Source: Macrostomum lignano (lineage: Eukaryota). From it: DNA of 64,000 bases. The stretch is from the NCBI GenBank assembly GCA_002269645.1, contig NIVC01002960.1:62001-126000 (forward strand). The letters run 5' to 3'. The position numbers were made by a program, and so were the translations under genes. Shown here piece after piece: positions 1 to 62,344 of the stretch (its first letter is position 1; the number at the start of each line of letters is the position of its first letter). Below the pieces are notes generated by a model. That model worked only from the letters and a program-made list of their open reading frames with translations, searched no databases and was not told the DNA's origin.

Positions 1-1226
1 GTGGCCTTCAAGAAAGTGCGGGCCTTTAAGAAGCGGTCGCTTATCCCGCACTCTGACCTCTGCCTCAAGGCTCTCGAGGAGTGTGGCGGGCTCAACATCC
101 TCACGGACTCGATCCCAGCCACCCTTCTCCTGAGCCAAAGGTATAAGGTCACCATTCAGCCTCGACACGAGGCGAGTGACAGCTGGAGCGACTCTGAAGT
201 CCACTGTTACACTGACGGCTCTATGAGGCATGGTCTTTCAGGCTTCGGAGCTTGCGTCTTCTTCAAGGGAGAAGTGGTGTGGAGCTACTCCCAGCACACT
301 GGGCTCAACTCCAGTGTTTTTCAGAGCGAGGTGCTTGCCATCAGCTCCTGCGCGGCAGAGCTGCGCCGAAGGCAGCTTAGCGGCCGGAAATTTATTTTTC
401 ACTCTGACAGCCAAGCAGCCCTTCGGGCCCTCTGCCGCAGCACCGCCAGCTCCAGGTCCGTCCTGGACTGCAACACCCAGCTCAACGGGCTTGCGCTAGG
501 CAACCAGGTGGAGCTCAGATGGATCCCGGGCCACGCCGGCTTCCTCGGCAACGAGCGCGCTGACCTGCTGGCCAAGGCTGGCTCCGCCGGCGCGCTATTG
601 GGGCCGGGCCCGGGTGCCCCCATCCCCGCCTCGGTGATCAATTCCCGCGTTAAGCGCTGGGCTGACTCCGAGCATCTCCGCAGGTGGCACGACACCCGGA
701 ATTGTAGGCAATCCCGTGCTGCCGTCCCCTGTCCCTCTCCTCTCCTGCGTAGAGCCCTCCTCAGTCCTCAGGCTCAACCGCAGAGACCTCAGAGCAGTTA
801 GCATGGCCCTCTCCGGGCATGGCTGCTTCTCTCGCCACCGCTTCCTTCAGGGCCAAGTACCCGAGGAGCGGTGCCCCTTCTGCCGCTCAGGCAGTGAAAA
901 CGCCGAGCATTTTATCTGCCACTGCCCGGTTTTCACCAGGGCCAGGCTTACTCACCTCGGGCCAAACCCGGTTCTCTCCGACGTTTGCAGGCCCGAGAGC
1001 ATCCCGCTGCTCGCCCGGTACCTCAGGGACACCGGACGAGCTGATTTCTTCCCCACCGTCGGTGAGGAGGACCGCGCTGCAGGCGAGACCGACGGGTCCC
1101 CCTGAGCGACACCACTTCAACGGAAGTCGTTGGTCGCCAGGGGCTAGCGGAATGGGCGGTCTCCTCCGCCTCCTCGCTGCATCCGCCGGACGCCCCCTGC
1201 AGCTAAGTCAAGTAAGTCAAGTCAAG
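1..1226 (+). mobile_element. 3' end of a non-LTR retrotransposon (LINE, Loa/R1/I-group-like): RNase H domain, C-terminal CCHC knuckle, 3' UTR and short-repeat tail
   Basis: RNase H motifs YTDGS, SVFQSEVLAI, FHSDSQAAL and WIPGHAGFLGNERADLLAK in ORF 1..801. The continuation in 716..1105 has LSGHGCFSRH and CPFCRSGSENAEHFICHCP. A 7-bp tandem duplication (TCCTCAG, 758-764/765-771) causes the frameshift between them. Ends in TAAGTCAAG/AAGTC repeats at ~1203-1226. Confidence 0.9.
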
Positions 1227-1824
1227 AGGCGTTTGGAATGCAATTAAGAACGCATCTGCGGGCGGTGCCAGGCTTGTTAGTGCAGCAGATAAAACAGGAA
1301 AAGTGCATTTCGGGTCGGGCGGCTCGTTTTTTTCATCCAGACGCCCGCCCAAACGCAGGAAAAGCCGCACGATACAACGCTGATATGGCCGCACCTGAAT
1401 CCTTCGCGTAGACGTACAGCAGGGACGCGGAAAACGGCGGCTGCTGCCTGGAGCTCTGCAGGCGGGTTGGGTTGGTGGGTGGAATTGATGGGTGCTGCTT
1501 TCCTGCCACAGCATGCTAACCTGACGCAAGAGGCCGGGAAAAGCCTTCGCATCAGTAGCGCGCTAGGCACTGATCTACGAGGAGGCGAGTGGTAGGTATG
1601 CACAGTGCCCTTGGGATCTGCTTTGCTATCGCTTCGGAAGATTATCGTTCAAATGTCAGGAGGCGGTGGTCAGGCCAATAAGGAACGCAATTAGTCTAGT
1701 AGTGCCAATATTAGTCCTGCTTTCAGCCCTGACTCCAGCTGCAGTACTTATACAGCCTGTACTATTCACTCAAATTACCTATACTCATGAACTAAATATA
1801 TGGACTGTACGCTGCCTTAATTAT

Positions 1825-2035
1825 TCACTCTAGTATTCACTCTACTATTCACACTACTATTCACTCTACTATTCATTCTACCATTCACTCTACTATTTAC
1901 ACTACTTTTCACCCTACTATTCATTCTACTATTCACTCTATTATTCACTCTACTATGCACTCTACTATTCACTCTACTATTCACTCTACTATTCACTCTA
2001 CTATTCAATCTACTAGTCACACTACTTTTCACCCT
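1825..2035. repeat. 12-bp tandem repeat (ATTCACTCTACT)n
   Basis: Directly visible period-12 array; it produces the spurious SRVN-repeat ORF 1817..2044. Confidence 0.95.
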
Positions 2036-3171
2036 ACTGTTCAAGCGGAGCTACAAACATTGTACTACGAGTATTTCGCCCATCAGACGTCAGACAGACA
2101 TCAATAGCAAAAGTACAGGCGCTAAAGTGCATGTGAAATTTCTATTCCAATCCTTCAACTCACCTCTACGGCAGCCGATGAGTGCCACAAGGCAGCCCAG
2201 CAGCACAAAATCAATGCAAGCATGCCTTGCTGCTTCGAAAAGAGCAACACGAACTCGACAAAATCTCTCTCTCTCCCGTGAAATAATTCTAAGCCCTGCA
2301 AGCTATAGTAGAGAGCTGAGCTTAAAACTCGTCAGAGAAGATCCTCTCGGGCGGAGAGATGTACGCCGTGGCAGAACAGGGCTGCAGGCTGATTGGCGCA
2401 CTGCAGCCGAGATAAAATTAGAGGCCGGGCGCCCCCAGAGACGGAGAGAAAGGAGAGAAAGGGCGCGGCAGACGTGCAAAAGCCAGATTGCAGCCCCGGC
2501 TTGGAAAACGGCTTGGGCTTGGGACCTCGGCCTGGTTGACTCACTCTGCAGAGCCCGCGCAGACAGAGGGCCAGAGAGCGACCCCAAATTTAGACTTTGC
2601 CGTCTCAGCCACTCCGCCCTGGGAGAGCTGCCTGCAATTTGGCATTTTTTCATGTTAATTCTAAAAGAATTTCTTTCAAAAGAAGGCTGTAACAATGCCA
2701 GTGCGGCGCGTGCAGGGTAGAGCGCAGATGTAGCGAACGACAAAGAGACGGCGAGACCAGAGAGTCAGGAAAGAAGCCGAGGGCACATCTTTTTTCCGCC
2801 AAAGCAGAGAGCCGAAAGCAGCCTTTTTATTTGCAAATGCAGTGCGAATTCAAGTCAGATATACTCATTTTTAAGCCTCGTTTGGCGACACAAGACAGCG
2901 CAGCTCTGTGGACCCCGTCAGAATCACTCGGTGTTGCGTTGCCATCTTCTATGACACAAAATATTGGACTGTCTGCTGATCTAAGCCAGCCAGTCCGTCT
3001 TTGGAAATAACATGTGAATATCAGGTATTCAGCGTAGGTCAGAAGTAAGTAAATACGAGAAAGAATATGCGACCTGCAAAATTTTCTGCTCGAAAAATCT
3101 GCAGCCTTCAAACCAAAATTATCCGAACCAACGATTCTCCAACCCACAACTGTCTCAACCCACAACAATAC

Positions 3172-3480
3172 AGCTGAGTCCCCAGCTGTCAACAAAGCTG
3201 AGTAGCTGTCAACAAAGCTTAGCAGCTGTCAATAAAGCTGAATAGATGTCAATAAAGCTGAGTAGCTGTCAACAAAGCTTAGCAGCTGTCAACAAAGCTG
3301 AGTAGCTGTCAACAAAGCTTAGCAGCTGTCAATAAAGCTGAATAGATGTCAATAAAGCTGAGTAGCTGTCAACAAAGCTTAGCAGCTGTCAACAAAGCTG
3401 AGTAGCTGTCAATAAAGCTGAGTAGCTGTCAATAAAGCTGAGTAGCTGTCAATAAAGCTGAGCAGCTGTCAATAAAGCTT
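3172..3480. repeat. 20-bp tandem repeat (AGCTGTCAAYAAAGCTKAGY)n
   Basis: About 15 visible copies. Confidence 0.95.
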
Positions 3481-3625
3481 GTATTCCACGATTTCATTTC
3501 CACAAAATTAATCGAAATAAAAAGGCAGTCAAAAGAGGCTCAAAATCGCAGACGCAAAAATCTCTGGACTAAAAAAGCAGCACGTTAACTGCGCCATCGA
3601 GTGGCAGCATTCAACGCACTGTGGA

Positions 3626-3810
3626 TGTCATGACTTATGGGGTGGGGCCGCGTGGTAGGGGTGGAGCTTGTTTAGTAAGCCTAGCTAGCAGTACGTACGG
3701 TAATGTACATGCGCGGGCCACCGTGCCCCTTGGCCTATAAAATATACAGAGCGTGGAGGGTTTTGCCTCAACTGAGTTTACTCCAGAATAAGCGAATTGA
3801 CTTCATTACA
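3626..3810 (+). repeat. 5' LTR
   Basis: TG...CA termini, TATAAAA at 3736-3742, exact copy at 7733-7917. Confidence 0.97.
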
Positions 3811-3812
3811 AT

Positions 3813-3827
3813 TGGCGACGAGAATGG
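3813..3827 (+). other. Primer-binding site, complementary to the 3' end of tRNA-Ser(GCU); overlaps the gag ATG (3824)
   Basis: TGGCGACGAGAATGG starts 2 nt after the LTR. The typical eukaryotic tRNA-Ser(GCU) 3' end (recalled, not searched) would give TGGCGACGAGGATGG. Confidence 0.75.
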
Positions 3828-6800
3828 CTTCAGTTGGACAACTAGAGCCTTACGAGGAAGGCAAAGATTGGGACGCCTATCAAGAGCGAATGGACTCTTA
3901 CATGCTTGCAAACGGCATAGAAGGCGACGAAAAGAAGAAGGCAGTGTTTCTGACATTGATTGGCGAACGATGCTACGCAGTCCTGCGGGATCTCTGCAGT
4001 CCGACCAAGCCAACAGATCTACAATACAGCGCCCTCACCGAGCACCTTCAAAAGCACTTCAAACCGAAGAAGCCAGTAATCGCTGAACGGTTCAAGTTCT
4101 ACAAGCGGGCACAAAAGGACGGAGAGACGGCTGCTCAATTTCTGGCTGCGCTGCGGAATCTGGCCGATTCGTGCGAGTTCGGGGGTTTCGAGAAGAAGCT
4201 CTCCGAGACTGTTTCGTCTGCGGTCTTCGGGACCAGCGGACCCAGCAGCGACTCCTGATGGAGGAGAAGCTCACGCTGGATGCGGCCAAGAAAATTGCCC
4301 TCGCGGCGGAGATTGCTAAGTCGGAAACGGAGCAGTGGAAATCGAGCTCAGACGTCAGCTCAGTCCAGCAGGTAGCGCCAGACTCGAAGGCGTGCTACAG
4401 GTGCGGATTGAAAGGCCACCTGTCGGCAGCCTGCCACTTCAGGACCGCAAAGTGCCACAACTGCGGGAAAGTTGGACACCTGCAGAAAGTTTGCCGCTCA
4501 GCCAAGAAAGCCTCCAGAACAACGAAAGCCGGACGGCCAGAGAACGGACCAGCGCACGCAATGCAAACGGAAGAGGAGGAGGAAGCAGCAACTGGCTGGA
4601 TTTCGCAAGTCACTGCATCGGCCAAGAAGATCAGCGTAAGCCTGCTGGTGAATGACCAGCCCCTCACCATGCAGCTGGACACCGGTGCCTGCGTCAGCCT
4701 CGTACCGGAGTCGGTGTGGAAGCAGCTCGGCCGACCTCCGCTGACACCAACACGCCTGCGACTCCGGACCTGGACGGGCGAGCCAATACAAGTCAAGGGA
4801 ACAGCCGAGGTCAGGGTCAACTACGACGGAAGACAGCATGATAAGCTGCCGCTGGTGGTCACCAGTCAGACCGGAGCCTGCCCATTGCTAGGACGCAATT
4901 GGCTGGAAAAAGTGCGACTCAACTGGACTCAGTTGTTTGCCAACCAGATCAGCCAGGCGCCGGCGCAGAACAGCGGGCCTCTCGACCAGATGCTGGAGGA
5001 GTTCGCTGATGTTTTCGACGAGAGCCTGGGGCAGTTGAAGGATCAGACAGTCGCACTGAGACTTAAAAGTGACGCACAGCCTCGATTCTGCAAGGCCAGA
5101 CCCGTGCCATTCGCAGTGCGGGACAAGCTTGAGCTCGAGCTCCAGGACATGCTCAACAAAGGGATCATCCGCCCGGTGTCCTACAGTGAGTGGGCTACGC
5201 CAGTGGTTCCGGTACTCAAGGCGGACGGCTCAGTCCGACTGTGCGGCGACTATAAACTGACGTTGAACCCTCAGCTCCACATCGACCAGTACCCGCTGCC
5301 TACGCCTGAAGAGCTTTACGAGCAGATGGGACGGGGTCAGCTGTTCTCAAAACTCGATCTGTCACAATGTTATCTTCAGTTTCCACTCGACGAAGAGAGC
5401 TGCAAGCTGACGACCATCAACACGCATAAAGGGCTTTTCGAGTACCTCCGGTTGCCATTTGGCGTCAGTTCGGCTCCTGCGATTTGCCAGAGGCTGATGG
5501 AAACACTTTTGAAGGGCGTGCCGGGAGTCTGTTGTCGCATTGATGACATCCTGGTCTCCGGTCCGTCAATGAGTGAGCACCTAGCAGCGCTTCGAGAGGT
5601 ACTGACCAGGCTGAGAGCGGCGGGCTTGCGGCTGAAGCGAATCAAGTGCAAATTTCTGCAAGAAGAAGTCGAATACCTGGGCTCGTTGCTGAGCAAGGAC
5701 GGAGTCAAGAAGCTGCCTCAGAAGGTGGAAGCAATAGTCAACAGCCCGAAGCCAGCGACAGTATCAGAGCTGCGATCATTCTTGGGCCTCGCAAACTACT
5801 ATGCTCGACATGTCAAGGACTTCTCCACGATCGCTGCTCCTCTGTATCAACTGTTGAGGAAGGAGACGGACTGGCGGTGGGCTGAGACGGAGGACCGAGC
5901 CTGGGACCATCTTAAGAAAGAACTGAGTTCGGACAGCGTGCTGACGCATTTCAACGAGCAGCTTCCAGTGGTGGTGGCCGCGGATGCTTCATCGGTCGGC
6001 ATCGGCGCGGTGCTGTCCCACACGATGGAGGACGGCTCGGAACGGCCGGTGACTTTTGCTTCAAGGACGCTGTCAGCAGCGGAGCGAAATTACTCGCAAA
6101 TTGAGAAAGAAGCCCTCGCCATCGTGTTCGCCATCAAGCGGTTCCACCAGTACCTGTTCGGCCGGAGCTTCACGATAATTACGGATCATCAGCCGTTGAC
6201 GACGATTTTCGGACCGAAGGTTGGCATCTCGCCGACTGCAGCAGGGCGACTTCAGAGATGGGCACTGCTGCTGTCAGGGTACAGCTACAGCATCCGGTTC
6301 CGCAAGACTGCTCAGCACAGCAACGCAGACGGCCTGTCTCGCTTGCCCCTGCAGATGAAGGACGACAACCCAGACGACGACGATCGGGTCTGTCAGCTGA
6401 CGGGCGAGTTTCCATTGACGGCGGCGGATGTAGCGGCAGCAACGAAGCGGGATGACGAGCTCCGAGATGTTCTCCGGATGATAATGACTGGCTGGCCAGA
6501 GTCGGTTCCGCCGCGGCTCGAGCCCTACTTTCGTCGTCGACTAGAACTAAGCGTGGAAGACGGCTGCGTGATCTGGGGAACTCGCGTGCTGGTTCCGGAA
6601 GCGTTGCGACCTGGAGTTCTGCGCGAGTTACACGTGGAACATTTCGGCATGGCCCGGATGAAAAGTGTCGCCAGAACCTTCGTCTGGTGGCCAGGAATGG
6701 ATTCTGACATCGAGTCGGTTGCCAGCAGCTGCCAAGCCTGCCAATCCGTTAAGCTGCATCCGGTGCTGGCTCCACTGCACCCCTGGGTGTGGCCAGACCA

Positions 6801-7700
6801 GCCCTGGGACCGCATCCACGTTGACTTTGCCGGGCCGGTTCGAGGCCGCCAGTTTCTCCTCGTAGTCGACGCGCACTCAAAGTGGCCGCATGTGGAGGCC
6901 GTGTCAACACTCGAATCGGCCGAGCTGGTTCGCAAGCTGCGAGTGTTGTTTGCACAATGGGGCCGCCGAGAGAACTGGTATCGGACAACGGTCCAGCATT
7001 CATCAGTCAAGGATTTAGCGATTTATGCAAAGCAAATGGAATTCGCCACACAAGAAGCAGTCCATATCACGCCAAGACCAACGGACTGGTGGAACGGCTG
7101 GTGAAGTCGTTCAAGATGGCCATGGAGGCGTCACGGAGCAGTCAGCCGGACCTCGACATCCGCCTGTGCAACTGGCTGCTGGGCTACCGAGCTAGCCCGC
7201 ACCCAACGACCGGTCGGACACCAGCGGAGCTCTTCCTGAAGCGGCAGCTCCGGACTCGAATGGACCTGCTGCGGCCGTCAGCCCGGGATCGAGTACTGCG
7301 GGAGCAATCTGCCCAGAAACGACAGCACGACCGGCGGTCGCGGGAGCTGCCGGAGGAGCCGTGGTCGGAGGCCTGGGCCAGGGACTACCGGCCTAATGCG
7401 GCGGCCTGGCAACCAGCAAAAGTTCTCGAGCAGACTGGGCCGCTGAGCTTCCGAGTCGAAACGAGCGACGGCCTGACCTGGCGCCGTCATGCCGACCAAC
7501 TGCGGGGCCGGCGAGTTGAGAGCGACAAACCTGACGGTCCGGCAGCCGGGACCGAGCCAGCTGAAGCTGCGGACTCGACCGGGACCGGCGCGGAGCACCC
7601 GGAGCCGGAGCCGCCAGACGCGCCCTGCGGACTGCAGCCTGCACGCCGGCGACGGCCACCTGAGAAGCTGACCTACTCGAAACTCGGGAGCTGTGATTGA
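3824..7700 (+). CDS. gag-pol: Gag-Pol polyprotein, interrupted by two -1 frame changes at 4181-4189 and 6959-6962
   Basis: Mag-type Gag start MASVGQLEPYEEGKDWDAYQER; two CCHC knuckles (CYRCGLKGHLSAAC, CHNCGKVGHLQKVC); protease LDTGA; RT WATPVVPV/LPFGVSSAP/RIDDILV; RNase H ADASSVGIGAVL; integrase IHVDFAGP...VSDNG...NGLVER. Built from ORFs 3797..4258, 4171..7104 and 6882..7700. Confidence 0.95.
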
Positions 7701-7719
7701 TAGGAAGCGGACTTCTTCT

Positions 7720-7732
7720 GAGAGGGGAAAAG
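7720..7732 (+). other. Polypurine tract
   Basis: GAGAGGGGAAAAG immediately 5' of the 3' LTR. Confidence 0.9.
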
Positions 7733-7917
7733 TGTCATGACTTATGGGGTGGGGCCGCGTGGTAGGGGTGGAGCTTGTTTAGTAAGCCTAGCTAGCAGTA
7801 CGTACGGTAATGTACATGCGCGGGCCACCGTGCCCCTTGGCCTATAAAATATACAGAGCGTGGAGGGTTTTGCCTCAACTGAGTTTACTCCAGAATAAGC
7901 GAATTGACTTCATTACA
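7733..7917 (+). repeat. 3' LTR
   Basis: Copy of 3626-3810, followed by the TSD GTGGA. Confidence 0.97.
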
Positions 7918-8381
7918 GTGGATTGCTTCTTTTCCGTGTAATTCAGCCAGTTAGGATTTGGCAAAGCAGTTGCTGGTCGTCATCGCATCGCACCAGCTAA
8001 TTGAACTCTTTCAAACTCTTCAGACAAAATTGACAGTTAGTTGCAAAATTGTGTTGGAAAAACGTATACTACTATTTTGTACTACTTAAAACAGTGCAGG
8101 CAGAATCACAATGACAATCGAATGGCAAACTGTATACATGATTTCGCTGCAGACATTTATCGCAGACGGAAATTAACAAAGGTGGTTTAGCAGCAGAGAA
8201 GCAGCAAAGTACATGCTGAAACAGAACCGGAATGCCGGGGCTACTCGTTCCGTTCATCAGCTTCCAATGCTTATGAATACAATGTAGAGCATGGCGAAGC
8301 GCTAGAAAGCAGAGCGACCGATTGCATAGAAGGTTTTTCTAAAGATTATACATGCAAATAAAGTAAGAGTAATCAGAATCA

Positions 8382-11300
8382 TCAGGTCAGGATGTCGGAC
8401 AGAGACTGGAACTTTGGTCCCCAGGCGTCCAGCGTCGGTCTCAAGTCGATGGAGCTGTCCGTGTCGGCCGACACCAGGCTCACCTGATCCAGGTCGGCCG
8501 CGTCGTCGTCCCGCGTGTCCTCGTAGCCGTAGTTCAGCGTCTCGTCACCAGCGGCTGCGTCCGGGGCTCCTGGTTGACGCTGTCTGGCGCCACAGGCTGG
8601 GTGGGCGGCACGCCAATCGGACGCTCCGGGTCGGCTGGAGCGCGGGCTGCAGCTTTTGGGGGTGTTTGTTGGTTGGTTGGTTGATTGGTTGGTTGGTTGG
8701 TTGGTTGGATGGTTGGTTGGTTGGATGGTTGGTTGGTTGGATGGTTGGTTGGTTGGTTGGTTGGTTGGTTGATTGGTTGGTTGGTTGGTTGGTTGATTGG
8801 TTGGTTGGTTGGTTGTTTGGTTGGTTGGTTGGTTGGTTGGTTGGTTGGTTGGTTGATTGGTTGGTTGGTTGGTTGGTTGGATGGTTGGTTGGTTGGATGG
8901 TTGGTTGGTTGGTTGGTTGGTTGGTTGATTGGTTGGTTGGTTGGTTGGTTGGTTGGTTGGTTGGTTGATTGGTTGGTTGGTTGGTTGTTTGGTTGGTTGG
9001 TTGGTTGGTTGGTTGGTTGGTTGGTTGGTTGGTTGGTTGGTTGGTTGGTTGGTTGGTTGGTTAAATGGTTGGTTGTTTGGTTGGTTGGTTGGTTGGTTCG
9101 TTCGTTCGTTCGTTCGTTTGTTGGTTGGTTGTTTGGTTGGTTGGTTGGTTGATTGGTTAATTGGTTGGTTGGTTGGTTGGTTGGTTGGTTGGTTGGTTGG
9201 TTGGTTGGTTGGTTGGTTAAATGGTTGGTTGGTTGGTTGGTTGGTTAAATGGTTGGTTGTTTGGTTGGTTGGTTGGTTGGTTCGTTCGTTCGTTCGTTCG
9301 TTTGTTGGTTGGTTGTTTGGTTGGTTGGTTGGTTGATTGGTTGATTGGTTGGTTGGTTGGTTGGTTGGTTGGTTGGTTGGTTGGTTGGTTGGTTGGTTGG
9401 TTGGTTGGTTGGTTGGTTGTTTGGTTGGTTGGTTGGTTGGTTCGTTCGTTTGTTGGTTGGTTGTTTGGTTGGTTGGTTGGTTGATTGGTTGATTGGTTGG
9501 TTGGTTGGTTGGTTGGTTGGTTTTTTTTTGGTTGGATAGTCTTTTGTCATTTTGCTTCCTGTCAGTGCGGCTTCCCAGTGCTGAAGCTCTTAGTTGAAGA
9601 ATGGAACCAGTTTCATCTGGCAATAAAGCATGTTGGAAACTTACAAGGCGCCGATGAATGAACCGGTTGAAAGTTCGGCAGGCCTCCGTTGCTGTCCTTC
9701 TGAGCGGGTGGAAATTGCAGACTCAGCGGTCCTTTGTAGTCCTCGGGAGCTGAAGTAAAGTGAGTCTGATCAGTGACTCTTGGCGCTTAGAGTGAAACAG
9801 CAATGGTTGGTGGGTCAGAAGATTTACTCACGGACGCCGTCATTTCCGGTGTCATCTCCCATGTCCTGGTTTATCTGCTCGATGTCGCTCTTAGGAGCCT
9901 CGGACCCCCTTTGCTTTCGTGACCGCTTTACAAATGCAAGGAGAATCAACAGGACGATGATGAAGAAAACCACGATGGCAATGATGAGCCACACCCACCA
10001 CTGCACCGCGGCAGTGGAAGGTGCTGGTGTGTTTTCGCCGCCAACTCGGCACATGCGGCTGGTGACCCCCGGCGGGCAGATGCACTCGAATCCCAGGTTG
10101 ACGCCCGTCGCCCGGCACGACCCGCCGCTCGGGCAGCTGATGTTGAACTTGCTGCACGGGTTCACGGCAACGCAGCTCTTGCCCGCGTCTCTCTCCTGTC
10201 CTGCTGGACACTCGCAGGTCATCTTGCCCCAGAGTCTCCGACAGACTTCCATTGATGGACAGTCGCAGGGAGGCGTCAGGTCCACACCGTCGGGACCGAC
10301 TCTGGCATCGCTGGCCAGCACTGGCGTGATGAAGCCACTTGTCGCCTCATTGATAGACCGATCTGCAGCATCCGTAGTTGTAGACATGTACGTGCCGGAG
10401 ACGCGGATGTTCCGCAGCCAGCCTGAGCGAATTCAGTGGAGAGGTGCTAATTGGTTCAATCAAGGTAGGAAACTGACACACTGGCACAGACATTGACTTA
10501 CTGCTGGCGATCTGGGCCGTCAAGTCCAAATTCGAGAGGTCGGCCACGGTTCGGCCCAGGTCGTGCAGCCTGTCGACCCCGTCAACTCTCAGCTTGAGCA
10601 CGGCTTGCCTGGTGGCGGCAAACACGGAGTGCCACTCGCCATCGTCGACTCTGATTGGCGGAAACGCGAAGCAGCTGGACGAGTCGATGCAGAGCTGCAG
10701 CAAGCCGTCCGAAATCTGGAGTCAGGGGAGGAAAATATTTGTATAAATTGAAGTTATGAGCTTCTTGGCTTCAGTTTAAAAAATTTCAGCTCACATCCAA
10801 GCTCTGACTCAGAACGGTTGAACGTGCCGAATTCTTGATTACAGCATGCAGGACGCCAGTCGATGCACTGACTCGAGTTCGCAGCTCCAACTCGATGGAT
10901 ACGGAATTTTTATCGCTTAATGGTAGCGAATTGTTCGGGTTCTCGAACCAGATGCTCGTATTGTTTGATGCGGTGCTGATTATCAGCGGATCTGCAGTCG
11001 AAACGTTTTCAAAATTCAGGCTTTCTAAGAAAACCTTTCGTCTAATGTAGGAAATGTCTCACCTTTGGTGCACGCATTCCAGGTTTCGTTTCTCTTGCAT
11101 AATTCGCTGCCAATAATTGTCTCTACCATTTTTCTCTTCGACCCAAGGCATTCGCAGTTGCAGTCCATCGGAGCTGAGGGATCGTTCTTGATGACCCCGT
11201 AGCACACCGACTGCGCTCCACAGACGTACGGGCGGCTGGACCGCGCACCAGCCGAACCCGTGCATGTTTCGTTCTGTAGCCCACAGAAAGCTCCTATCGT

Positions 11301-13041
11301 GGCGCCTCCACCTTGCGTGACTTCCCTGCCAGCCGCCATGTCTATCAGGTAGCCGTTCACCCGAACTGACTGCACGCAGCCAGAGAGCGCTCTTCCGATA
11401 TCGAGCCATAAATTAGGAAAGTCGCTAACTGGACTGCCTGCACTGATGTTTTGAGAAGAGCATTCAAGTGGTTGCACACTGGCTGAAGTTGGCAGCTTTT
11501 TAGGGCAGACCACCATCCTGCTCTGAAAACGATTGGGTACCTATTCAGCTTCTGTCAAATATGAATATATCCCAGTACATATTGTCCAATCAGAACGTCT
11601 CTTACCAGTTCAGATTTCACTGATACATGGACAGCGAACCAGCTGCCGCTGTTTTGCTGAGGTAGGTCAACGCTAATAGAATCTCCTCCCAGTAAACTTC
11701 CAGCCACTCTGAGCTCTGTCTTCCTGTAGACAAACGTTGCGCTGAGCAATGAGTTATGGGGGTCGGCCGAGCTCTTCAAGACTACGGCGTCCTGGTTTTC
11801 TTGCTGGATAGTTCCGGAAAGTTCAAATGAGATTTCCAGAGACTGAACCGAGTGCGGCAGGCTGCCAATCCAGTGGCGAGTGAAGGCCAGACCGGATGAC
11901 CCGTGGCTGTAGCTTCTGACCGGGTACTCGCATCGAGGACCCCACGGGATGTTCGCGACAGACGGGCAGATGCACCTGCAGAGGGTGAAAAGTTTTTGTA
12001 GGTCTGTTGATGACATCGCTGCTTTTAAATGATGTCATACTTTGCTTTGCCGTAGCTCAGATGGCCGAAATGGCACAGATGGCACACAACTTGCCTGGAT
12101 CCGACACCAGTAAAGTTGGCATCGCATACTCCGTCGTTCAGGCAAGTGGCCGGCCCGCACGGCTCTGCGCTCATCTGCTCGGCTGTCTGAGCCGTCCAGC
12201 TCAGCCCGAATCCCAGGAAGTTCGAGTCGCTGTTGAGCTGCACCACAGCCGGATGCACCGATGGAAGCGAGCTGCTCGAAAAGCGCAGGCGACTGCGGCA
12301 CAGCTGAGCGGACTCAGCGGGACACCGATCCGGCATCACCTGGACTCCGCTACTCGCTTCAGTTTCGTTCTTCACCAGCTCGTACGCCTCCCAGAGGGCC
12401 AAGTAGGAGCTGGTGCTGGCCTTCGGTATGAGCAGGGACACCTCTGAGGTGTCGGCGGCCGGCTGCAGCTGAGAGACGAGGCGAGCCGACAGCCGACTCT
12501 TGAGTCTGGCCACCAGACTGTTGATGTCGTTCGTTCGACCTGCGGGAATTGAGCGGGCAGTTCTTGTGTGTAGGGGAATCAACAGGTCATGCCAAGCTCC
12601 GACAATACTCACCTGAAATGAATATTGCATTGTCGAGCACGCTCAGGGGCAGCCGGGAGACTGTGACACTGAGCTGGTGAATGGCGGTGCCGATGGTCAC
12701 CTGGACTAGGTGTGTGCCACCTGGCAGGTCGGCCTTGAACACAATCCTGTTTGGCACGGAGCTCCTGTCAACATCGAACTTGTCTGGCACCAGCCCGCTG
12801 CTCACGCTGTCGATAAGGTCCGAGCCGCTGATTGTCATGTAGGCGAAGCTGTACTTTGTGAAGTCCGCATCTGAGAAATGATTTAAACAGTTTGATCAGC
12901 AATCCATAGCCATGGCGTCTCACCCATGTCCCGCAAGTGCAACTCACCGTCCGGCAGCCGGACTTCAACGCTGGCCGAGTCGCAGAGGCCGCCAGTGGCC
13001 AAAGCCAGCAGAATGAGGGCTGCAGAGCTGCACCGAAGCAT
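8382..13041 (-). CDS. Classical-cadherin-like protein, paralog 1: SP - one degenerate EC-like domain - NC - EGF - LamG - EGF - LamG - EGF - TM - cytoplasmic domain with beta-catenin-binding C-terminus
   Basis: Phase-consistent exons: 13041-12948 (signal peptide [20 protein letters not shown]), 12870-12613, 12539-12095 (GC donor), 11975-11606, 11522-11063, 11024-10795, 10715-10502, 10422-9832 (EGF + [26 protein letters not shown]), 9749-9645, and a last exon starting at 8596 or 9616 and ending at 8382. The C-terminus [10 protein letters not shown]...[15 protein letters not shown] matches the classical cadherin catenin-binding signature. Confidence 0.85.
8666..9535. repeat. (GGTT)n/(AACC)n microsatellite
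   Basis: About 870 bp of imperfect tetranucleotide repeat inside the last intron or last exon of cadherin paralog 1. Confidence 0.97.
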
Positions 13042-13807
13042 GACCGACCAGCACTGGCTCGGGCTGAAACTGAGGCGAGTCTCTGGCGCTGCGCTCGTGG
13101 CTGCTTTGTGTTTGTTTTGGTGCGCGGCCTCCACCAGTGCGGACTGGCTGGGGTCAGTGGGGGAGTCGGAGGTGGCGGCAGGCACTTTAATCAGCAGGGG
13201 GAGAGAGGGGGGCGCATGGAGGCCGGGCCCAGTCCTAATGCCGAGCTCTGTTGCTGATAAGCGCCGGCCTATGGCGGGTGAGTCAGGCCTTCCCGGGCCC
13301 CGCCCCGCCAGATCGAGCAGCCCGGCAGGCGCAGGACAGGTGCGCATAAAAAGGAATCATTTTTTCCTACTTTATTTCGCCTACTCGCTGCATAATTGCG
13401 GCCCAGCCACCCCCGCCGCCGCATTGCAGGCCCAGCGAGTTGTGGGCCGCAGCTTGGGGGGGGAGTCAGAAATATTCGAATTGCACACGCAGCTCGAGAG
13501 CATTTCTTGGAGCTGCAGGGCGAGACAGAGCAGTCACTGATAAAGTCACCGGGCAGAGCTGAGCCAAGGAGATAAGGCTGCACAGGGCGCGGCTTCGCTC
13601 TGCCGCAGTTGCTCACACTGCACCGCTGCCGCATCTATCTGGCAGGGTCCCGGTGTCTCTTGGATGATCATATTTGACGCCTATTAATATCTATTATAGC
13701 TTTGAGGTTTGAGTATGACCACACTGCTGTCACAGTACACTGGTAATTCTTCAGTTCGAAACAGATTTTAAACAAGAACTTTGTGGTGGATTCAAGTCAA
13801 CTAACCT

Positions 13808-14345
13808 GAGGAGAAGAGAGGAGATGAGAGAAGAGGAGAGGAGAGGAGAGTAGAGGAGAGGAGAGGAGAGGAGAGTAGAGGAGAGGAGAGGAGAGGAGAG
13901 GAGAGGAGAGGAGAGGAGAGTAGAGGAGAGGAGAGGAGAGGAGAGGAGAGGAGAGGAGAGGAGAGGAGAGGAGAGAGAGGAGAGGAGAGAAGAGAGGGAG
14001 AGGAGAGGAGAGAAGAGGAGAGGAGAGGAGAGGAGAGGAGAGGAGAGGAGAGGAGAGGAGAGGAGAGGAGAGGAGAGGAGAGGAGAGGAGAGGAGAGGAG
14101 AGGAGAGGAGAGAGGAGAGGAGAGGAGAGGAGAGGAGAGGAGAGGAGAGGAGAGGAGAGGAGAGGAGAGGAGAGGAGAGGAGAGGAGAGGAGAGGAGAGG
14201 AGAGGAGAGGAGAGGAGAGGAGAGGAGAGGAGAGGAGAGGAGAGGAGAGGAGAGGAGAGGAGAGGAGAGGAGAGGAGAGGAGAGGAGAGGAGAGGAGAGA
14301 GAGAGGAGAGGAGAGGAGAGGAGAGGAGAGGAGAGGAGAGGAGGG
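13808..14345. repeat. (GAGAG)n pentanucleotide microsatellite
   Basis: Directly visible. Confidence 0.97.
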
Positions 14346-14433
14346 AGAAGATAGCTAAGAAGAGACATTAACAATAAGCGGACCGAATTGGTATTGTGAA
14401 GTTTCAAAGGACACGTAGAGAGGCTTTGCGGTC

Positions 14434-14683
14434 CGTATGTGGCCGCCCTGGGTCAGAGCGTCGGACTCGCGGCTTGAAGGTCAGGGGTTCGATTCCTGAT
14501 CCCACTGGAACAATTTGTGTCCTTGAGCAAGACACTTGACTCTGCATTGCTTCAGTTCATCCAGCTGTAAATTGGGTGCCATCATTAGCTGAGGTAATTG
14601 AGGGCGTGTGTGGTGACCCCCAGTCCTTGGACTAAACAGCCGTACGCAGCCTTCAGATGTATTCAATTATTATTATTATTATT
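14434..14683 (+). mobile_element. tRNA-derived CORE-type SINE, family 1, copy A
   Basis: B box GGTTCGATTCC; MIR-CORE-like segment TGTGTCCTTGAGCAAGACACTTGAC...CAGCTGTAAATTGGG; (ATT)n tail; homologous to 16955-17140 and 21690-22000. Confidence 0.85.
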
Positions 14684-15664: not shown

Positions 15665-16319
15665 TAGGCCTCCCAAAAGCCACTTCAATGTGATTGACAG
15701 AAATGAAAAATTTAAATGAGGTGTTGGAAACTAGAAGGGTGATCGATATGTGAGCTCAATAAGTGACCGATGGGAGATCGGTTGATTCGAAGCCAGCAGA
15801 AGCCAGAAATCTAAGAAATGCTTTAACAAACTGGCAATTTTTGCACCCGGCAGCTCTGCACACTCGCCCGAGCGCCCCACCCAGATCGATCCGCTGCCAG
15901 CCCGAACGGGTGAACAGCCTGCAGATTATTTTCAGCCACTCCCCGGCCCTTCAGTGCCAGCTGGATCTGCGCCGCCTTGCCTTCCCAGAGACGCAAAGAA
16001 TCGCGGCAAAGGTTGCGCCAGCCGTCCACTCCGCCAATTGCACTACGTCGTAGCAGCCAGACCAAATCTGGCGGGGGGGGGGGTTCTTCCCTCATCCCTC
16101 TCGGGTCCGCAGGCCCTTGATCCCTGTGTAAGCACGAACTGTTAGTAGGCGCTTTTGTTCGCGACCCCTAGCGGGGTTTTAGCAGGCGGGCAGAGCGGCT
16201 AAAAAGGGGATTTCTGCACGAATTTGAGAGTGCAGACACCTGGAAGCTCTCCGGGACCGCCGATCTTCGTCTGACTCACTGGGCAGCCACTCTACCAGTG
16301 TTTAAAGTTCTCGTGTGTC

Positions 16320-17554
16320 ATGCCGCTGGCGGCTCTCTGGAGTTGCCGTGGCTCCAAAAAGCGGCAGCGGAAAGAGCAGCAGCAGCAACATGGAGGCAAG
16401 GATCCCACTGCCACCTCCCGCGAGGCTGAGGTACCCGAGGATGTCGACTTGACCGAAGCTCTGGCCGACGAAGAGATCGCCGAGTGCGTGCAGACTTTCA
16501 ACACATTCGACTACGACAACGACGGACGCATAAGCATGAAGGAGCTTGGCAACATCCTGCGCTGCCTTGGATACGGCTGCTCTCGGGCAGAGCTCAAGGT
16601 GAACTATCTTGGTATATAGTTGACAATATTCCTAGAGCCGCAAGGAATACTATGGTAGTCTCTAGGTGAGACAAGTCTAAACTCTACAGAGCCTTACCTG
16701 CCGAGCGTTCCTCCAGACCACAGAATTGTCCAGACAGAATCCTCCAGACCACAGAATTGTCCAGACAGAATCCTCCAGACCACAGAATTGTCCAGACAGA
16801 ATCCTCCAGATCACAGAATTGTCCAGACAGAATCCTCCAGACCACAGAATTGTCCAGACAGAATCCTCCAGACCACAGAATTGTCCAGACAGAATCCTCC
16901 AGATCACAGAATTGTCCAGACAGAATCCTCCAGACCATATCCAGACCAGATTCCGGATTCCACTGGAACAATTTATGTCCTTGATTAGCTGGGGTATTTG
17001 AGGCTGTGTGTGGGACCCCCCTGACCATGGACTGAACAGCCGTACGCAGCCTTCAGATGCGCCGCTTCAGCTGCGGCTGATCTGTCGGTTGCACATCTGG
17101 CCCAATCGGAGCTGGTGTAATCAGTTATTATTATATTACTGGGTTGCAGAATTCACTGCAGAGGTCTCTGGATGTTTTTGAGTGGTAAGAATTCCCGCAA
17201 AACTCGAAACTTGGGCCTCAGAGTGCAGCCCTGCTCCCGCAGGAGATGTTCGCCGGCATTGACAAGAACGGAAACGGCTTCATTGACCTGCAGGAGTTCC
17301 TCGGCCTCGTGGGCCTCGGGCAGCTTCGCCACCGGCAGCAGACGGACCGCCAGCTGGCGAAGGCCTTCCGAGTCTTCGACGCCGACCGAGACGGCTTCAT
17401 TGGCCCGGCGGAGCTGCGGGCTGCCCTGCGCCGCCTGTTGAAGCCCGCTGAGGTCACCGACCGACTGGTGGACGACATGATTCGCGGCGCTGACCGTGAC
17501 GGCGACGGACGCGTCTCCTTTGCCGAGTTCGTCGGCATCGTCAGCCCGCGGTAG
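16320..17554 (+). CDS. Calmodulin-like 4-EF-hand protein with a basic N-terminal extension
   Basis: Exons 16320-16598 (AAG|GTGAAC) and 17243-17554 (CCCGCAG|GAG), phase 0. EF loops DYDNDGRISMKE, DKNGNGFIDLQE, DADRDGFIGPAE and DRDGDGRVSFAE. The start codon is not certain. Confidence 0.9.
16710..16945. repeat. 31-bp intronic tandem repeat (CCTCCAGACCACAGAATTGTCCAGACAGAAT)n
   Basis: About 7 copies. Confidence 0.95.
16955..17140 (+). mobile_element. SINE family 1, copy B (5'-truncated, internally deleted)
   Basis: Shares ACTGGAACAATTT, CAGCCGTACGCAGCCTTCAGATG, GGTTGCACATCTGGCCCAAT and the TTA tail with the other copies. Confidence 0.85.
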
Positions 17555-18368
17555 CCGGAGCCATTGTGGATCGAGGCCAGCTGAGAGCTGGGGAATGCGG
17601 CCCAGTTTCTTGCCTTCCATCTGAAGAGCCCAATGACTCCACAAGCTGATATTGGTTGCACTCGTAGTTAAAATTTAGCGCTGTTTTTGCTGTACAGTAC
17701 AGAATTCTTGGATCGCGTGCGTGCGGATGTCATTGCCCCAGGCTGCTGCGAGAAATTTGCTTAAAAACAAACACTTTTTGTTGTCTCGATGAACTGCTGA
17801 GTTTTTTGCTAAGTTTACTCACTTCTCGCTTGTTGGGACGCAGAAGAAGAAATCTATGCACTGTATCAGTGGGTAAATTCGCCCACTGTGCATCAGCCCT
17901 AACCCAAGGCAGATACTCAAGCCTGCTTAGTTTCTCACCGATTGGACATGGAGACATTTTGGGCTCTGTGAAGTCCTCTACTGACTCTACTCAGATGTAG
18001 ATATGACCTCAGTGTAAAATTCTGGTACTACTTAGGATGCTCCGTCAATCTTCGTCCCCCGCGAGCTCGCAGACAACTCGGTGTACAATTGGCATATGTC
18101 TCGGGGCAGAGAAGTACAACTCAGGCTCAGGCGCAAACAATGAGAACTTCAAGGCGTCCATATTTCTTGCACTCAGAGCTTCTCAACAGCAGCGAAGGAA
18201 GAGGAGGCGAGGTTCGCTACCGAAACTTGAAAAACTTTGCCTACATAATTTCTATCAAGGGGACGAAAATAACGAAAATGAAACAGTCGGATGGTTGAAG
18301 CTGTGTTAGCTAACAACTGCTCAAAACGCTGAATTTCTCAAATCACTCCAAAACTCCAATCATCAAAA

Positions 18369-19850
18369 ATGCGAGCAAGTCAAGCAGTCACCGTCGCTCA
18401 CATCGCGGTGCTGCTGACGATGCGCTGCTGCCTGAAGGTTATGGAGTACCAGTTCATCACACTGGCCGCAGCAAGCTCCAATGCCAGCACCGCCACCGAG
18501 GGAGTGGCGGAGTCGGCCTCGCCGATGTCCTGGATGTACACCTGCCGCTTTTTGCTAGGCGCTCTGGGCGGCCTGGTGGCCTGCTGGATCGGCCACGTGC
18601 GCACCCTGCAGCTGGGCGGCTGCGTCCTGCTGGCATCGGCTGGCGCCATGGCCGGCGCCGTGTACACCGACCAGTGGCGCCCGGACTCCGGCGCCGCGCT
18701 GACCGCCTGCGCCCTCATGCTGGTCTACAACGGCCTGGTGATCCCCAACGTGATGTACGCAGTGCTGAGCAAGCGGACGAGGCCGCAGCGCCGCACGGTG
18801 CTCTGCGCGCTCGTCTACATGTCCTCCGCGGCCGGCCTGTTTGTGGGCATCCAGGTGCAGCACCTGCTGACCAACCCGAGCGTTGGCAAACACTGCAGCC
18901 TTGTCTGGCTGGCCTTCGCCCTCGCCTTTGCCGCGCTCGCCTTCCTAGCGCTGCCGCGGCTCGACGGAGCAGCCGCGATGGCACCGAGCTCCGGGCAGCT
19001 CGACACGGCTCCGCCGCCGCCGTTTTCGAAGCTGCTGTGCGACTGCGGGCACGTCCTGCTGCCGACTTGGAGCCGTCTGAAGCGCAGCTGCATTGTCTTC
19101 GGGACGCTGATCCCCTTCCTGGTGGGTCTGTGCGATGACCGGTCCTCGGCCTTCAACGCGCAGCGGGCGCTGCAGCCGCTCATCGCCAACTCCAGCGGAG
19201 GTAACTCCGGAAATGACCGATTGAGCGATTCGCTGGATAGTGCGCTGCTGGCAGTCAGCCTGGTGGCCGTCAACGGAGGTCTGATGGTCGCCGCCTGCTG
19301 CCTGCGCGGTCGCAGACGTCTCCCAGTGCAGCCGCGGCTCCTGGCGGGCATCGTCATGGAGGCGGCCCTGGAGCTGGCGCTGGCGGCAGTCAGTGGCGTT
19401 GGGCTGGCCGACCCTGTGGCCGTGTCCGCGCTGTACACCGCTTCTACAGTGGTGGACGCGACCGCCGCCGCGCTGACGATGGTGGCCGCCTACGAGCTGA
19501 TGGACAGCTTTGAGCGGGACGCCGCAATGCCACTGATTTTCGGCATCATGCTGACTGTGTGGGGTCTCGCGAACCTGGCCAGCCGCTGTATTGTCACGAT
19601 CTGCCGCCGCCTGCCGCCCGACAACCCGATCCTGCAGCCGAGCGCCGGCAAGCCGCCTCTGCTGTTCGTCTACCACTCGCTGCTGCTGGCGCTGCTGCTG
19701 CTGAGCCTCGCCTTCTGGCGGCTGTTCGCCCTGCGGCTTGCCCGCTCGCTGCAGGTTATATATGAGGACGAGGTGCCAGAAGCTTCCGCCGGCCCCGTCA
19801 ACGATAGCGACGGGGAGAACCGGCCGCTGCTGGACCCCGCCATCAACTGA
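18369..19850 (+). CDS. Intronless multi-pass membrane protein, MFS-fold/POT(SLC15)-like transporter (divergent)
   Basis: 493-aa GC3-rich ORF with about 11-12 hydrophobic segments. GALGGLVACWIGHVRTLQLGG resembles the MFS/POT TM2-3 loop. C-terminal ENRPLL dileucine. Confidence 0.75.
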   Translation: MRASQAVTVAHIAVLLTMRCCLKVMEYQFITLAAASSNASTATEGVAESASPMSWMYTCRFLLGALGGLVACWIGHVRTLQLGGCVLLASAGAMAGAVYTDQWRPDSGAALTACALMLVYNGLVIPNVMYAVLSKRTRPQRRTVLCALVYMSSAAGLFVGIQVQHLLTNPSVGKHCSLVWLAFALAFAALAFLALPRLDGAAAMAPSSGQLDTAPPPPFSKLLCDCGHVLLPTWSRLKRSCIVFGTLIPFLVGLCDDRSSAFNAQRALQPLIANSSGGNSGNDRLSDSLDSALLAVSLVAVNGGLMVAACCLRGRRRLPVQPRLLAGIVMEAALELALAAVSGVGLADPVAVSALYTASTVVDATAAALTMVAAYELMDSFERDAAMPLIFGIMLTVWGLANLASRCIVTICRRLPPDNPILQPSAGKPPLLFVYHSLLLALLLLSLAFWRLFALRLARSLQVIYEDEVPEASAGPVNDSDGENRPLLDPAIN

Positions 19851-61540: not shown

Positions 61541-62344
61541 GTATTGGGGCGATCGCTCGGGATAGGGCAGCACACAAGGTGCCTAAGTGCCTTGATCGGC
61601 CCGAAGAATTCTTGACAAAAGCAATAGGAGAGGTTAGGGAGTCTTCTTGTTGCGCAGGAGCAGAATTTCTAAAGCCGTGATCCCCGGCCTCACGCTATAA
61701 GCCTTGGAAACACTTGGCAAGGCTGCCGATCCCGGGCAAGGGTTTAATTGAAGGTACTCATTCGCCCCGACTGGGTCGTCCCCGCCCTCTAGCCTCTGTC
61801 GACCAGCCGCTGCTGCACTTATGGTCACCGACTCAAGCGAGTCGTTGAAGCGGCTGGGACTCGGCGCGGAAGCATGTGTTCCCGTTCTCAATGCCGGACG
61901 GTCTGGAGATCAGTGGGGGGGGGGGGGGCTGGCGGACGCTTGGGTCTCGGAGCTTCGAGAGCTTTTTGCTGCTGTGGAGGCCGCAGGACAGATAGAAGGT
62001 TGAAGCAGAAAAACTGTGGGACAGCTCCCGACGGCAGAATAGAGGGCTGGCCAGGCGGTCATGGGAAGGGGGACCGAAGGAGACAGTTAGGGAGAAATTC
62101 CCAAGTTCTGCCTGGCTGGGATCAAACTTTTTTTCCACCGCGACCACGCATGCGTTGGTCTCTCTGAGCGAAGCCGCGTTTCAGTTAAATTTTTACTAAT
62201 TAATAATTCTCCAGCCCAGGCCTGCGGCTCGCTTTATCCGATTAAAAGGTTCTGCTGGGGCCGGTTATTGCATTTGGCGGGCGCATCAACACGGGACAGA
62301 CTGCAGTGCTGCCCAACAGGCAACAGGCAGTTGTGCCGCATTCT

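Follow-up and report, generated by a model that had tools for sequence, protein, structure and literature searches.

Two Tandem Macrostomum Genes for Cadherin Stalks Without Cadherin Repeats

The stretch analysed here, referred to as the window, comprises 64,000 nucleotides of the flatworm Macrostomum lignano (positions 62,001 to 126,000 of contig NIVC01002960.1, assembly GCA_002269645.1). It is eukaryotic in character, with a GC content of 53%, short introns and numerous microsatellites, and it carries on its minus strand two tandem genes, gene 1 (8382-13041) and paralog 2 (20314-25683; BOX15_Mlig019320g1). Their products resemble the membrane-proximal part of type III classical cadherins and have lost the canonical calcium-binding extracellular cadherin (EC) repeats, an architecture that is conserved between the two genes. 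The encoded order is a signal peptide, an alpha/beta region, EGF-LamG-EGF-LamG-EGF, one transmembrane helix and, in gene 1, a cadherin-type tail.

The closest proteins are all from M. lignano: P0001 (BOX15_Mlig000582g1, partial, 1096 residues), which shares 96% amino acid identity with gene 1, P0002 (A0A1I8HRW4; 87%) and P0003 (BOX15_Mlig019320g1; 865 residues). A word-based search with the family alignment recovered these three proteins and no others. Gene 1 itself corresponds to a 1045-residue NCBI product on NIVC01002960.1 (GCA_002269645.1), the start of which lies at window position 13326. The gene for P0001 is a sibling copy, located on NIVC01001867.1 (locus L003), whose DNA is 98% identical to that of gene 1 across the gene only, the flanks being unrelated.

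Gene 1 consists of ten exons between an ATG at 13041 and a stop codon ending at 8382. Exon 1 (12948-13041) holds the start codon and the signal peptide, ends on VEVRLPD at a GTGAGT donor, and is separated by a phase-1 GT-AG intron of 77 nt (12871-12947) from exon 2 (12613-12870), which encodes a beta-rich domain of about 90 residues. The first-pass annotation had proposed this signal exon, the short intron and a second exon starting at 12870, and its coordinates and splice sites proved correct. Exon 3 (12095-12539) encodes an NC-like alpha/beta domain (DRCPAE...CRSRLRFS...FLGFGL) and the first half of EGF1. Exon 4 (11606-11975) carries the end of EGF1 and the first part of LamG1, and exon 5 (11063-11522) completes LamG1 and continues into a cysteine-rich EGF2 region, both assigned by global hhalign with type III cadherins. 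LamG2 starts in exon 6 (10795-10991; Pfam and hhalign), has its core in exon 7 (10502-10715; Pfam Laminin_G_2, E=9e-7) and ends in exon 8 (9832-10422), which also contains the EGF3 region, the transmembrane helix (9929-10000) and a degenerate juxtamembrane segment. A cytoplasmic linker follows in exon 9 (9645-9749), and exon 10 (8382-8652) encodes a catenin-binding domain (DETLNYGYE...SLVSADT) that becomes readable only after a +1 frame correction, to which we return below. The intron between them (8653-9644) is filled almost entirely by a (CCAA)n microsatellite (8664-9522).

All introns of gene 1 are of the GT-AG type except intron 3, which has a GC donor (AG/GCAAGT) at 12093-12094 where the matching site of paralog 2 has GT. 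Exon 3 most likely ends at this donor, since the boundary preserves the cysteine pattern of EGF1 and agrees with paralog 2 and with the annotated relatives. An in-frame GT donor lies 54 nt downstream (12040-12041), and its use would insert 18 residues into EGF1. An exon 3 ending at this second donor was rejected, as the added residues break EGF1 and both paralog 2 and P0001 favor the GC donor.

Paralog 2 comprises eight GT-AG exons (25683-25587, 24633-24370, 24285-23841, 22947-22578, 22501-22060, 21450-21254, 21175-20962 and 20882-20314), and its conceptual translation matches P0003 with zero differences. It shares the ectodomain of gene 1, including the signal exon and the phase-1 junction behind it (VEVLLPD/D), bearing out the earlier suggestion that the architecture is conserved between the paralogs. 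Its cytoplasmic tail is short and lacks a catenin-binding domain, the protein ending 25 residues past the membrane.

Homology to Type III Classical Cadherins

Pfam places Laminin_G_2 and Laminin_G_1 above their cut-offs in the stalk, and EGF weakly. A phmmer search with P0001 against 1.84 billion representative sequences returned 39 matches in total. The long ones are "neural-cadherins" of 2400-2970 residues from a centipede, a hemichordate, molluscs, an echinoderm, a mite and an annelid (Strigamia, Ptychodera, Ylistrum, Anneissia, Fragariocoptes, Babylonia and Owenia), and they align exclusively with the LamG2-EGF3-transmembrane-tail portion, to the last residues (E=1.6e-11 to 1.7e-4). Global hhalign against the C-terminal 1140 residues of type III cadherins gave a collinear alignment of 829 columns. 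Identity of the flatworm sequences to other type III cadherins, at 22-30%, is so low that a tree would be governed by long-branch effects.

The tail was compared with a profile built from nine type III cytoplasmic domains, against which it scores 18.1 bits, versus a maximum of 7.6 bits in 1000 shuffles. In this alignment ...SLVSADT... stands with D.L..Y.YEG...SLSSL...YL..WGPKF.KLADM of the type III cadherins. By our own reading, its D-E-T-L-N-Y-G-Y-E appears to fit the D-x-theta-theta-x-Phi-x-x-E core, with WGPKF also present. P0001 and P0002 carry an intact catenin-binding domain; in the window copy of gene 1 it is out of frame, and paralog 2 has none. The beta-catenin-binding tail announced by the first-pass annotation is thus recognizable, but it cannot be attributed to gene 1 as assembled, nor to paralog 2. 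As judged from the homology that extends from LamG2 to the C-terminus, the family is derived from a type III classical cadherin.

Loss of the Cadherin Repeats

The Pfam cadherin repeat PF00028 was not found at E<=1 in the proteins of gene 1 or paralog 2. We further built an EC profile from 40 EC repeats cut from eight type III cadherins, for which a fish neural-cadherin, as positive control, gave 3e-30. This profile matched neither the proteins themselves nor any of the 1383 open segments into which the window falls when translated in six frames (best E=4.3), among them the segments of the 38 kb lying upstream of paralog 2 and of the 7-kb interval that separates the two genes. The sibling copy's locus of 25 kb, which includes 9.7 kb upstream of the gene, gave no match to it either. 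The view that this is a cadherin-derived gene without canonical ECs, with no room for hidden EC exons, is therefore sustained by the negative PF00028 result, the silent EC profile and the type III homology from LamG2 onward. A further proposal, that the protein partners a separately encoded EC chain, finds no support, as the window contains no EC-coding sequence.

The N-terminus of these proteins is genuine insofar as the gene models agree on it. The 5' untranslated region of gene 1 (13042-13326) is collinear with the genome and in open frame, is translated as an N-terminal extension in the partial NCBI model, and bears no similarity to ECs. P0001 maps from 13326 to 12949 at 100% identity, and both P0001 and P0002 begin with a translation of the sequence immediately upstream of the ATG, so in the underlying models exon 1 is reached collinearly, with no splicing from another site. 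In paralog 2, an in-frame stop precedes the ATG by eight codons. Both tandem genes are transcript-supported, and the first exon is backed by transcript-based models.

Only one other relative spans the whole ectodomain, P0004 (797 residues; 30% identity, E=1.2e-54), which derives from an intron-less, RNA-like contig of 2698 nt with a GC content of 59% (L004; Logan assembly, run SRR30276812). An in-frame stop precedes the ATG of this contig, and the encoded protein begins as the Macrostomum proteins do, with a signal peptide followed by "VNIVGPDDPDF". The stop codon of the contig comes right after EGF3 and no transmembrane segment is encoded, suggesting that P0004 may be a secreted form of the family.

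A Possible Vestigial EC and NC-like Domain at the N-terminus

The mature N-terminal domain aligns by hhalign, weakly and in register, with the last EC of type III cadherins (E=0.003-0.014), V.V..PDD.DF falling on GRVYA.DPDDWD and F.VD.SS on F.LD.SSG. PDDADF in exon 2 stands opposite DPDDWD in the last EC of type III cadherins and includes a DAD triplet, which we read as what survives of the DxD motif. The earlier statement that calcium motifs are missing is correct for LDRE and DxNDN, the absence of which is expected at the last-EC position, but it is not strictly true for DxD. For the following domain, hhalign places DRCPAE..CRSRL on DEC..E..C.N.L, again weakly (E=0.04).

Two AlphaFold models of the region both predict seven beta-strands and, after them, a beta-alpha-beta-beta-alpha-beta unit; in the model computed from a family-only alignment the pLDDT (predicted local distance difference test) score is 50-69 in this N-terminal region. 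When searched with Foldseek, the sole significant PDB match of both models is mouse CELSR1 CADH9-GAIN (8vy2_A; E=1.4e-9 and 2.2e-5), a structure extending from the last cadherin repeat (CADH9) to GAIN. The best reading of these data, short of proof, is that the region may represent a vestigial last EC followed by an NC/PCPS-like domain. Such a pair fits the remark, made in a review, that DE-cadherin's last EC and its PCPS act together as a single functional unit (PMC3216324).

Short Cadherin Relatives in Parasitic Flukes

A search started from a fluke match yielded homologs of 735-784 residues in flukes, namely Fasciola hepatica (P0054, annotated as "Neural-cadherin"), Trichobilharzia (P0055), Schistosoma haematobium (P0056) and Calicophoron (P0015), together with a 522-residue fragment from Heterobilharzia that ends inside LamG2. 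Pfam detects only LamG and EGF domains in these proteins, and no PF00028. Their layout is signal peptide-EGF-LamG-EGF-LamG-EGF-transmembrane helix, beginning at EGF1, and their tails contain LDQVLEYGYEG and no WGPxF segment. A BLASTP comparison of P0001 with the F. hepatica protein (E=9e-15) is collinear from LamG1 to L(N/E)YGYE. The S. haematobium gene spans 40 kb, and the EC profile found nothing in the gene or its 10-kb flanks (60 kb in all; L001). Taken together with the Macrostomum data, these results place EC-less descendants of type III cadherins both in a basal free-living flatworm and in flukes. The name "neural-cadherin" attached to fluke proteins also calls for caution in annotation, there being no cadherin repeat inside.

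No EC-bearing flatworm cadherin appears among the phmmer matches of P0001, a result that is uninformative since few type III cadherins were detected from any phylum. A literature search brought up no publication dealing with classical cadherins of flatworms or with the gene identifiers BOX15_Mlig000582g1 and BOX15_Mlig019320g1. Co-immunoprecipitation of planarian beta-catenins in HEK293T cells used a flag-tagged E-cadherin construct, not a planarian cadherin.

A Model for EC-less, Catenin-coupled Adhesion

We propose that the window contains two tandem members of a flatworm family that would have arisen from an ancestral type III classical cadherin by truncation of the N-terminal ectodomain. 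The truncated protein would have kept a signal peptide, a vestigial beta-sandwich devoid of calcium linkers at the last-EC position, an alpha/beta domain at the NC/PCPS position, EGF1-LamG1-EGF2-LamG2-EGF3 and the transmembrane helix. Gene 1 and its sibling copies would in addition have kept the cytoplasmic domain, in which the juxtamembrane part is degenerate and the catenin-binding domain recognizable. By analogy with the amphioxus Bb1- and Bb2-cadherins discussed below, the LamG/EGF stalk itself could mediate calcium-independent binding, homophilic or heterophilic, and the tail could recruit an adhesion-type beta-catenin and alpha-catenin, linking the protein to actin at adherens junctions. 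Tail-less forms, comprising paralog 2, the frameshifted gene 1 if the shift is real, and the secreted-looking P0004, might modulate the catenin-coupled form or compete with it. We consider a type III-derived, EC-less family probable, with calcium-independent, catenin-coupled adhesion as its likeliest role.

Several observations weigh against this model, and most of them concern the two ends of the protein. At the N-terminus, homology to the last EC and NC over the first 225 mature residues is weak throughout (hhalign E=0.003-0.04). Profiles built with HMMER for the last EC and the NC of type III cadherins score no better on the Macrostomum N-terminus than on shuffles, and membership of these domains at the sequence level is accordingly not claimed. 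Pfam PF24811 (NC/Ig_Shg), which detects the Strigamia type III cadherin at E=2.7e-33, misses all members of the family. The structural evidence is affected as well: the better of the two models, of 270 residues, has a mean pLDDT of 59.5 and is partly circular, type III segments having been placed in its alignment, and the independent one is poor (pLDDT 38). The NC label given in the first-pass annotation was drawn from motifs; only position, the weak hhalign match and the predicted fold speak for it, and PF24811 and HMMER fail to confirm it. At the C-terminus, the tail matches PF01049 at E=8.5e-4 and 19.8 bits, below the 24-bit Pfam cut-off, and a phmmer search with the tail against PDB sequences returned no match. 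The profile of type III cytoplasmic domains detected no juxtamembrane p120 motif of the GGGEED type, and no homology to the catenin-binding tail in paralog 2. As assembled, both window genes may thus be uncoupled from catenin, the tail of gene 1 being out of frame and paralog 2 being tail-less. Finally, the PCPS/EGF/LamG region of DE-cadherin is reported, in the same review, as dispensable for homophilic binding and needed for ventral furrow formation (PMC3216324), from which it follows that adhesion by the stalk alone is no general property.

Alternative Readings

Of four alternatives, a non-adhesive receptor or sink ranks as the most likely, followed by decay of the window copy, then by a long isoform that has stayed hidden, and lastly by an origin outside the cadherins. 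In the first, the stalk-only protein would not adhere at all and would serve as a LamG-based receptor for a ligand or the matrix, or as a membrane sink for beta-catenin, following a neurexin- or Crumbs-like logic. The dispensability of the DE-cadherin stalk for homophilic binding, as summarized in PMC3216324, speaks for it, and the tail-less (paralog 2) and secreted-looking (P0004) variants would suit ligand-binding or decoy roles.

The pattern of divergence between the tandem genes bears on the same question. The ratio of nonsynonymous to synonymous substitution (dN/dS) between gene 1 and paralog 2 is 0.2-0.6 in all ectodomain and transmembrane segments, including 0.42 in the vestigial EC domain, and 0.78 in the 20-codon signal peptide, indicating that both genes are under purifying selection. 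Synonymous divergence (dS) itself is mosaic. The NC-like domain and LamG2 show values of 0.07-0.09, against 0.9-1.6 for the N-terminal domain, LamG1 and EGF2; the introns in the NC-like and LamG2 regions are also approximately 96% identical between the paralogs (9832-13041 versus 20314-25683). This mosaic suggests gene conversion of some segments, with divergence retained in others. LamG1 and EGF2 diverge fastest (dS 1.3-1.6, approximately 52% amino acid identity), as would be expected of specificity determinants. The same divergence fits distinct homophilic specificities equally well, and the sole EC-less relatives studied experimentally, Bb1 and Bb2, are homophilic and junctional. We regard a non-adhesive role as unlikely.

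The second alternative concerns gene 1 alone, which may be a decaying or tail-less duplicate. At 8566-8563 on the minus strand the window copy reads CCCC where the sibling copy, in DNA that is 98% identical, reads CCCCC. The frame of gene 1 consequently shifts after ...VNQEP and ends nine codons later, and this 1-nt deletion in the C-run accounts for the early stop of the 1045-residue NCBI product, compared with 1096 residues in the sibling copy, and puts the catenin-binding segment out of frame. The 4-C run may be either a homopolymer assembly error or a real truncation. Were the deletion real, the catenin-binding domain would no longer be encoded here. The species has several near-identical copies (P0001 and P0002), and paralog 2 shows tail-less forms to be tolerated, both of which speak for this reading. 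A single-base homopolymer indel is, however, a common type of assembly error, the rest of the exons, nine in all, are intact and their splice sites fit the consensus except for the intron 3 GC donor, and a downstream acceptor at 8555/8554 would restore the frame. This acceptor was also tried as the start of the last exon, where it keeps the tail in frame, and was rejected, since P0001 puts the real acceptor at 8654/8653. Decay of the window copy is possible, if doubtful.

A third reading treats the short gene as an artefact of the models, with EC exons lying further upstream under an alternative promoter and the short form being a minor isoform. There is a precedent in C. elegans hmr-1, which according to PMC3216324 makes isoforms with 2 and 14 ECs from alternative promoters. 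An EC-free 64 kb combined with a 77-nt first intron makes a long isoform of the hmr-1b type very unlikely, and the 9.7 kb upstream of the sibling copy has no EC-coding potential either. Moreover, the 7 kb between the paralogs are occupied on the opposite strand by an EF-hand gene and another open reading frame, the signal exon is the start of three independent models, and in the P0004 contig a stop codon precedes the ATG. The probability we attach to this reading is very low.

Lastly, the family could stem from an unrelated EGF/LamG receptor, for example of the CELSR, Crumbs or neurexin type, whose tail resembles that of cadherins by chance. Such an origin could appeal to the lack of a Pfam cadherin domain, the PF01049 score below cut-off and CELSR1 as best structural match, yet it is the least credible of all: most named relatives and all long ones are neural-cadherins (other names, such as LRP2 and SNED1, occur only among a few weak EGF-region matches), collinearity with type III cadherins begins in the N-terminal domain and reaches the final residues with WGPKF..L.D, and the proteins have one transmembrane helix and no HormR/GAIN/7TM, the EC-EGF-LamG stalk layout being shared by CELSR and type III cadherins.

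Other Features of the Window

The 7 kb separating the paralogs contain, on the plus strand, an EF-hand gene (16275-17551) and a 505-residue open reading frame (18333-19847) with many hydrophobic stretches and no Pfam match, where NCBI calls a gene of only 177 residues. A (CTCCT)n tandem array lies upstream of gene 1 (13808-14351). Paralog 2 contains minisatellites with units of 16 nt in intron 5 (21481-21705), 30 nt in intron 3 (23134-23641) and 21 nt in intron 1 (24921-25314).

Three copies of an element of approximately 200 nt (14455-14659, 16949-17100 and 21700-21960), 85-92% identical to one another, contain a tRNA-like segment (GGATCGAACCC..GACCTTCAAG); intron 5 of paralog 2 harbors one copy, and another lies upstream of gene 1. 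ARAGORN called no tRNA in the window despite the tRNA-like sequence, and the three elements are probably short interspersed nuclear elements. A Ty3/gypsy-type retrotransposon pol region (protease, reverse transcriptase, RNase H and integrase) occupies 4171-7700 on the plus strand, with a frame break before the integrase core, and a separate RNase H open reading frame stands at the window start (1-798, plus strand). At the sibling locus, positions 1-9700 upstream of the gene hold open reading frames of up to 1307 residues that have no counterpart in the window, and this flank may be a large inserted element.

Implications for Cadherin Evolution

Adherens junctions throughout the animals are assumed to have classical cadherins as their adhesive core, with the EC repeats regarded as the binding part. 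A catenin-coupled cadherin without ECs is of a very rare known kind, and a second EC-less lineage would show that a LamG/EGF stalk with a catenin tail is a recurrent and viable end state. Macrostomum would represent an intermediate form that keeps the last-EC/PCPS unit, the flukes being shorter still. These proteins would thereby offer a tractable system for the role of the long-mysterious PCPS/EGF/LamG region: RNA interference works in M. lignano and planarians, and transgenesis in M. lignano was reportedly achieved by Wudarski et al. in 2017.

The finding would carry more weight for cadherin evolution if flatworms lacked EC-bearing classical cadherins. It is conceivable, although rather improbable, that the phylum has no EC-bearing, catenin-binding classical cadherin at all, its junctions relying on EC-less, calcium-independent LamG/EGF receptors that were reduced stepwise, the last EC and NC being kept in Macrostomum and lost in flukes. 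Such a phylum-wide loss would add an independent second case to the replacement proposed for amphioxus, and could connect to the split of flatworm beta-catenin into signaling and adhesion paralogs. The finding itself raises the question of what holds flatworm epithelia together.

Comparison with Known Systems

The membrane-proximal layout of the CELSR/Flamingo family, in which the last cadherin repeat is followed by EGF/LamG modules, resembles the one proposed for the Macrostomum proteins, and the structural match to CELSR1 CADH9-GAIN (8vy2) is limited to the common stalk. CELSR proteins have nine real ECs and continue into HormR-GAIN-7TM, whereas a single transmembrane helix, and no Pfam GAIN, HRM or 7tm_2 domain, was found in the Macrostomum proteins.

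Type III cadherins (DN-cadherin, "neural-cadherin" and cHz-cadherin) have the order NC-EGF-LamG-EGF-LamG-EGF-transmembrane helix-cytoplasmic domain, which the Macrostomum proteins appear to follow, and align with them collinearly. They differ in possessing many ECs with calcium-binding linkers, of which neither Pfam nor the EC profile detects any in the Macrostomum proteins; mature DN-cadherin is described as having 15 ECs (PMC8325961) and the spider Pt-cadherins as having 17 (PMC5473995). C. elegans HMR-1A, with 2 ECs according to PMC3216324, resembles the Macrostomum protein in being strongly shortened while keeping a membrane-proximal stalk and a catenin-binding tail. It nonetheless retains its 2 ECs and its gene also makes the 14-EC form, whereas no long isoform is possible within the window. 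HMR-1A had been taken in the first-pass annotation as the shortest form available for comparison, a place that belongs to the EC-less amphioxus Bb1- and Bb2-cadherins, which precede the present case (PMC3216324).

Within the flatworms, the fluke proteins share with Macrostomum the EGF-LamG-EGF-LamG-EGF-transmembrane order, a tail with L(N/E)YGYE (L-E-Y-G-Y-E in the flukes), the absence of PF00028 and collinearity. They differ in being without the EC vestige, the NC-like domain and the WGPxF..LADMY segment, and are named by similarity only.

To our knowledge, amphioxus is the only precedent for the present case and the single documented exception among classical cadherins. Its Bb1- and Bb2-cadherins are described as lacking ECs and having LamG/EGF domains in common with type III cadherins, and their conserved cytoplasmic domains as forming a complex with catenin; they mediate calcium-independent homophilic adhesion and localize to adherens junctions (Oda et al. 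2002, 2004, as summarized in PMC3216324). The Macrostomum protein, known from its sequence, is likewise type I and EC-less, with a type III LamG/EGF stalk and a cadherin-type cytoplasmic domain. It differs from the amphioxus proteins in probably keeping vestigial last-EC-like and NC-like domains, in a tail that is far more diverged, and in having tail-less paralogs. Given the phylogenetic distance between the two lineages, the loss of ECs in flatworms was probably independent of that in cephalochordates.

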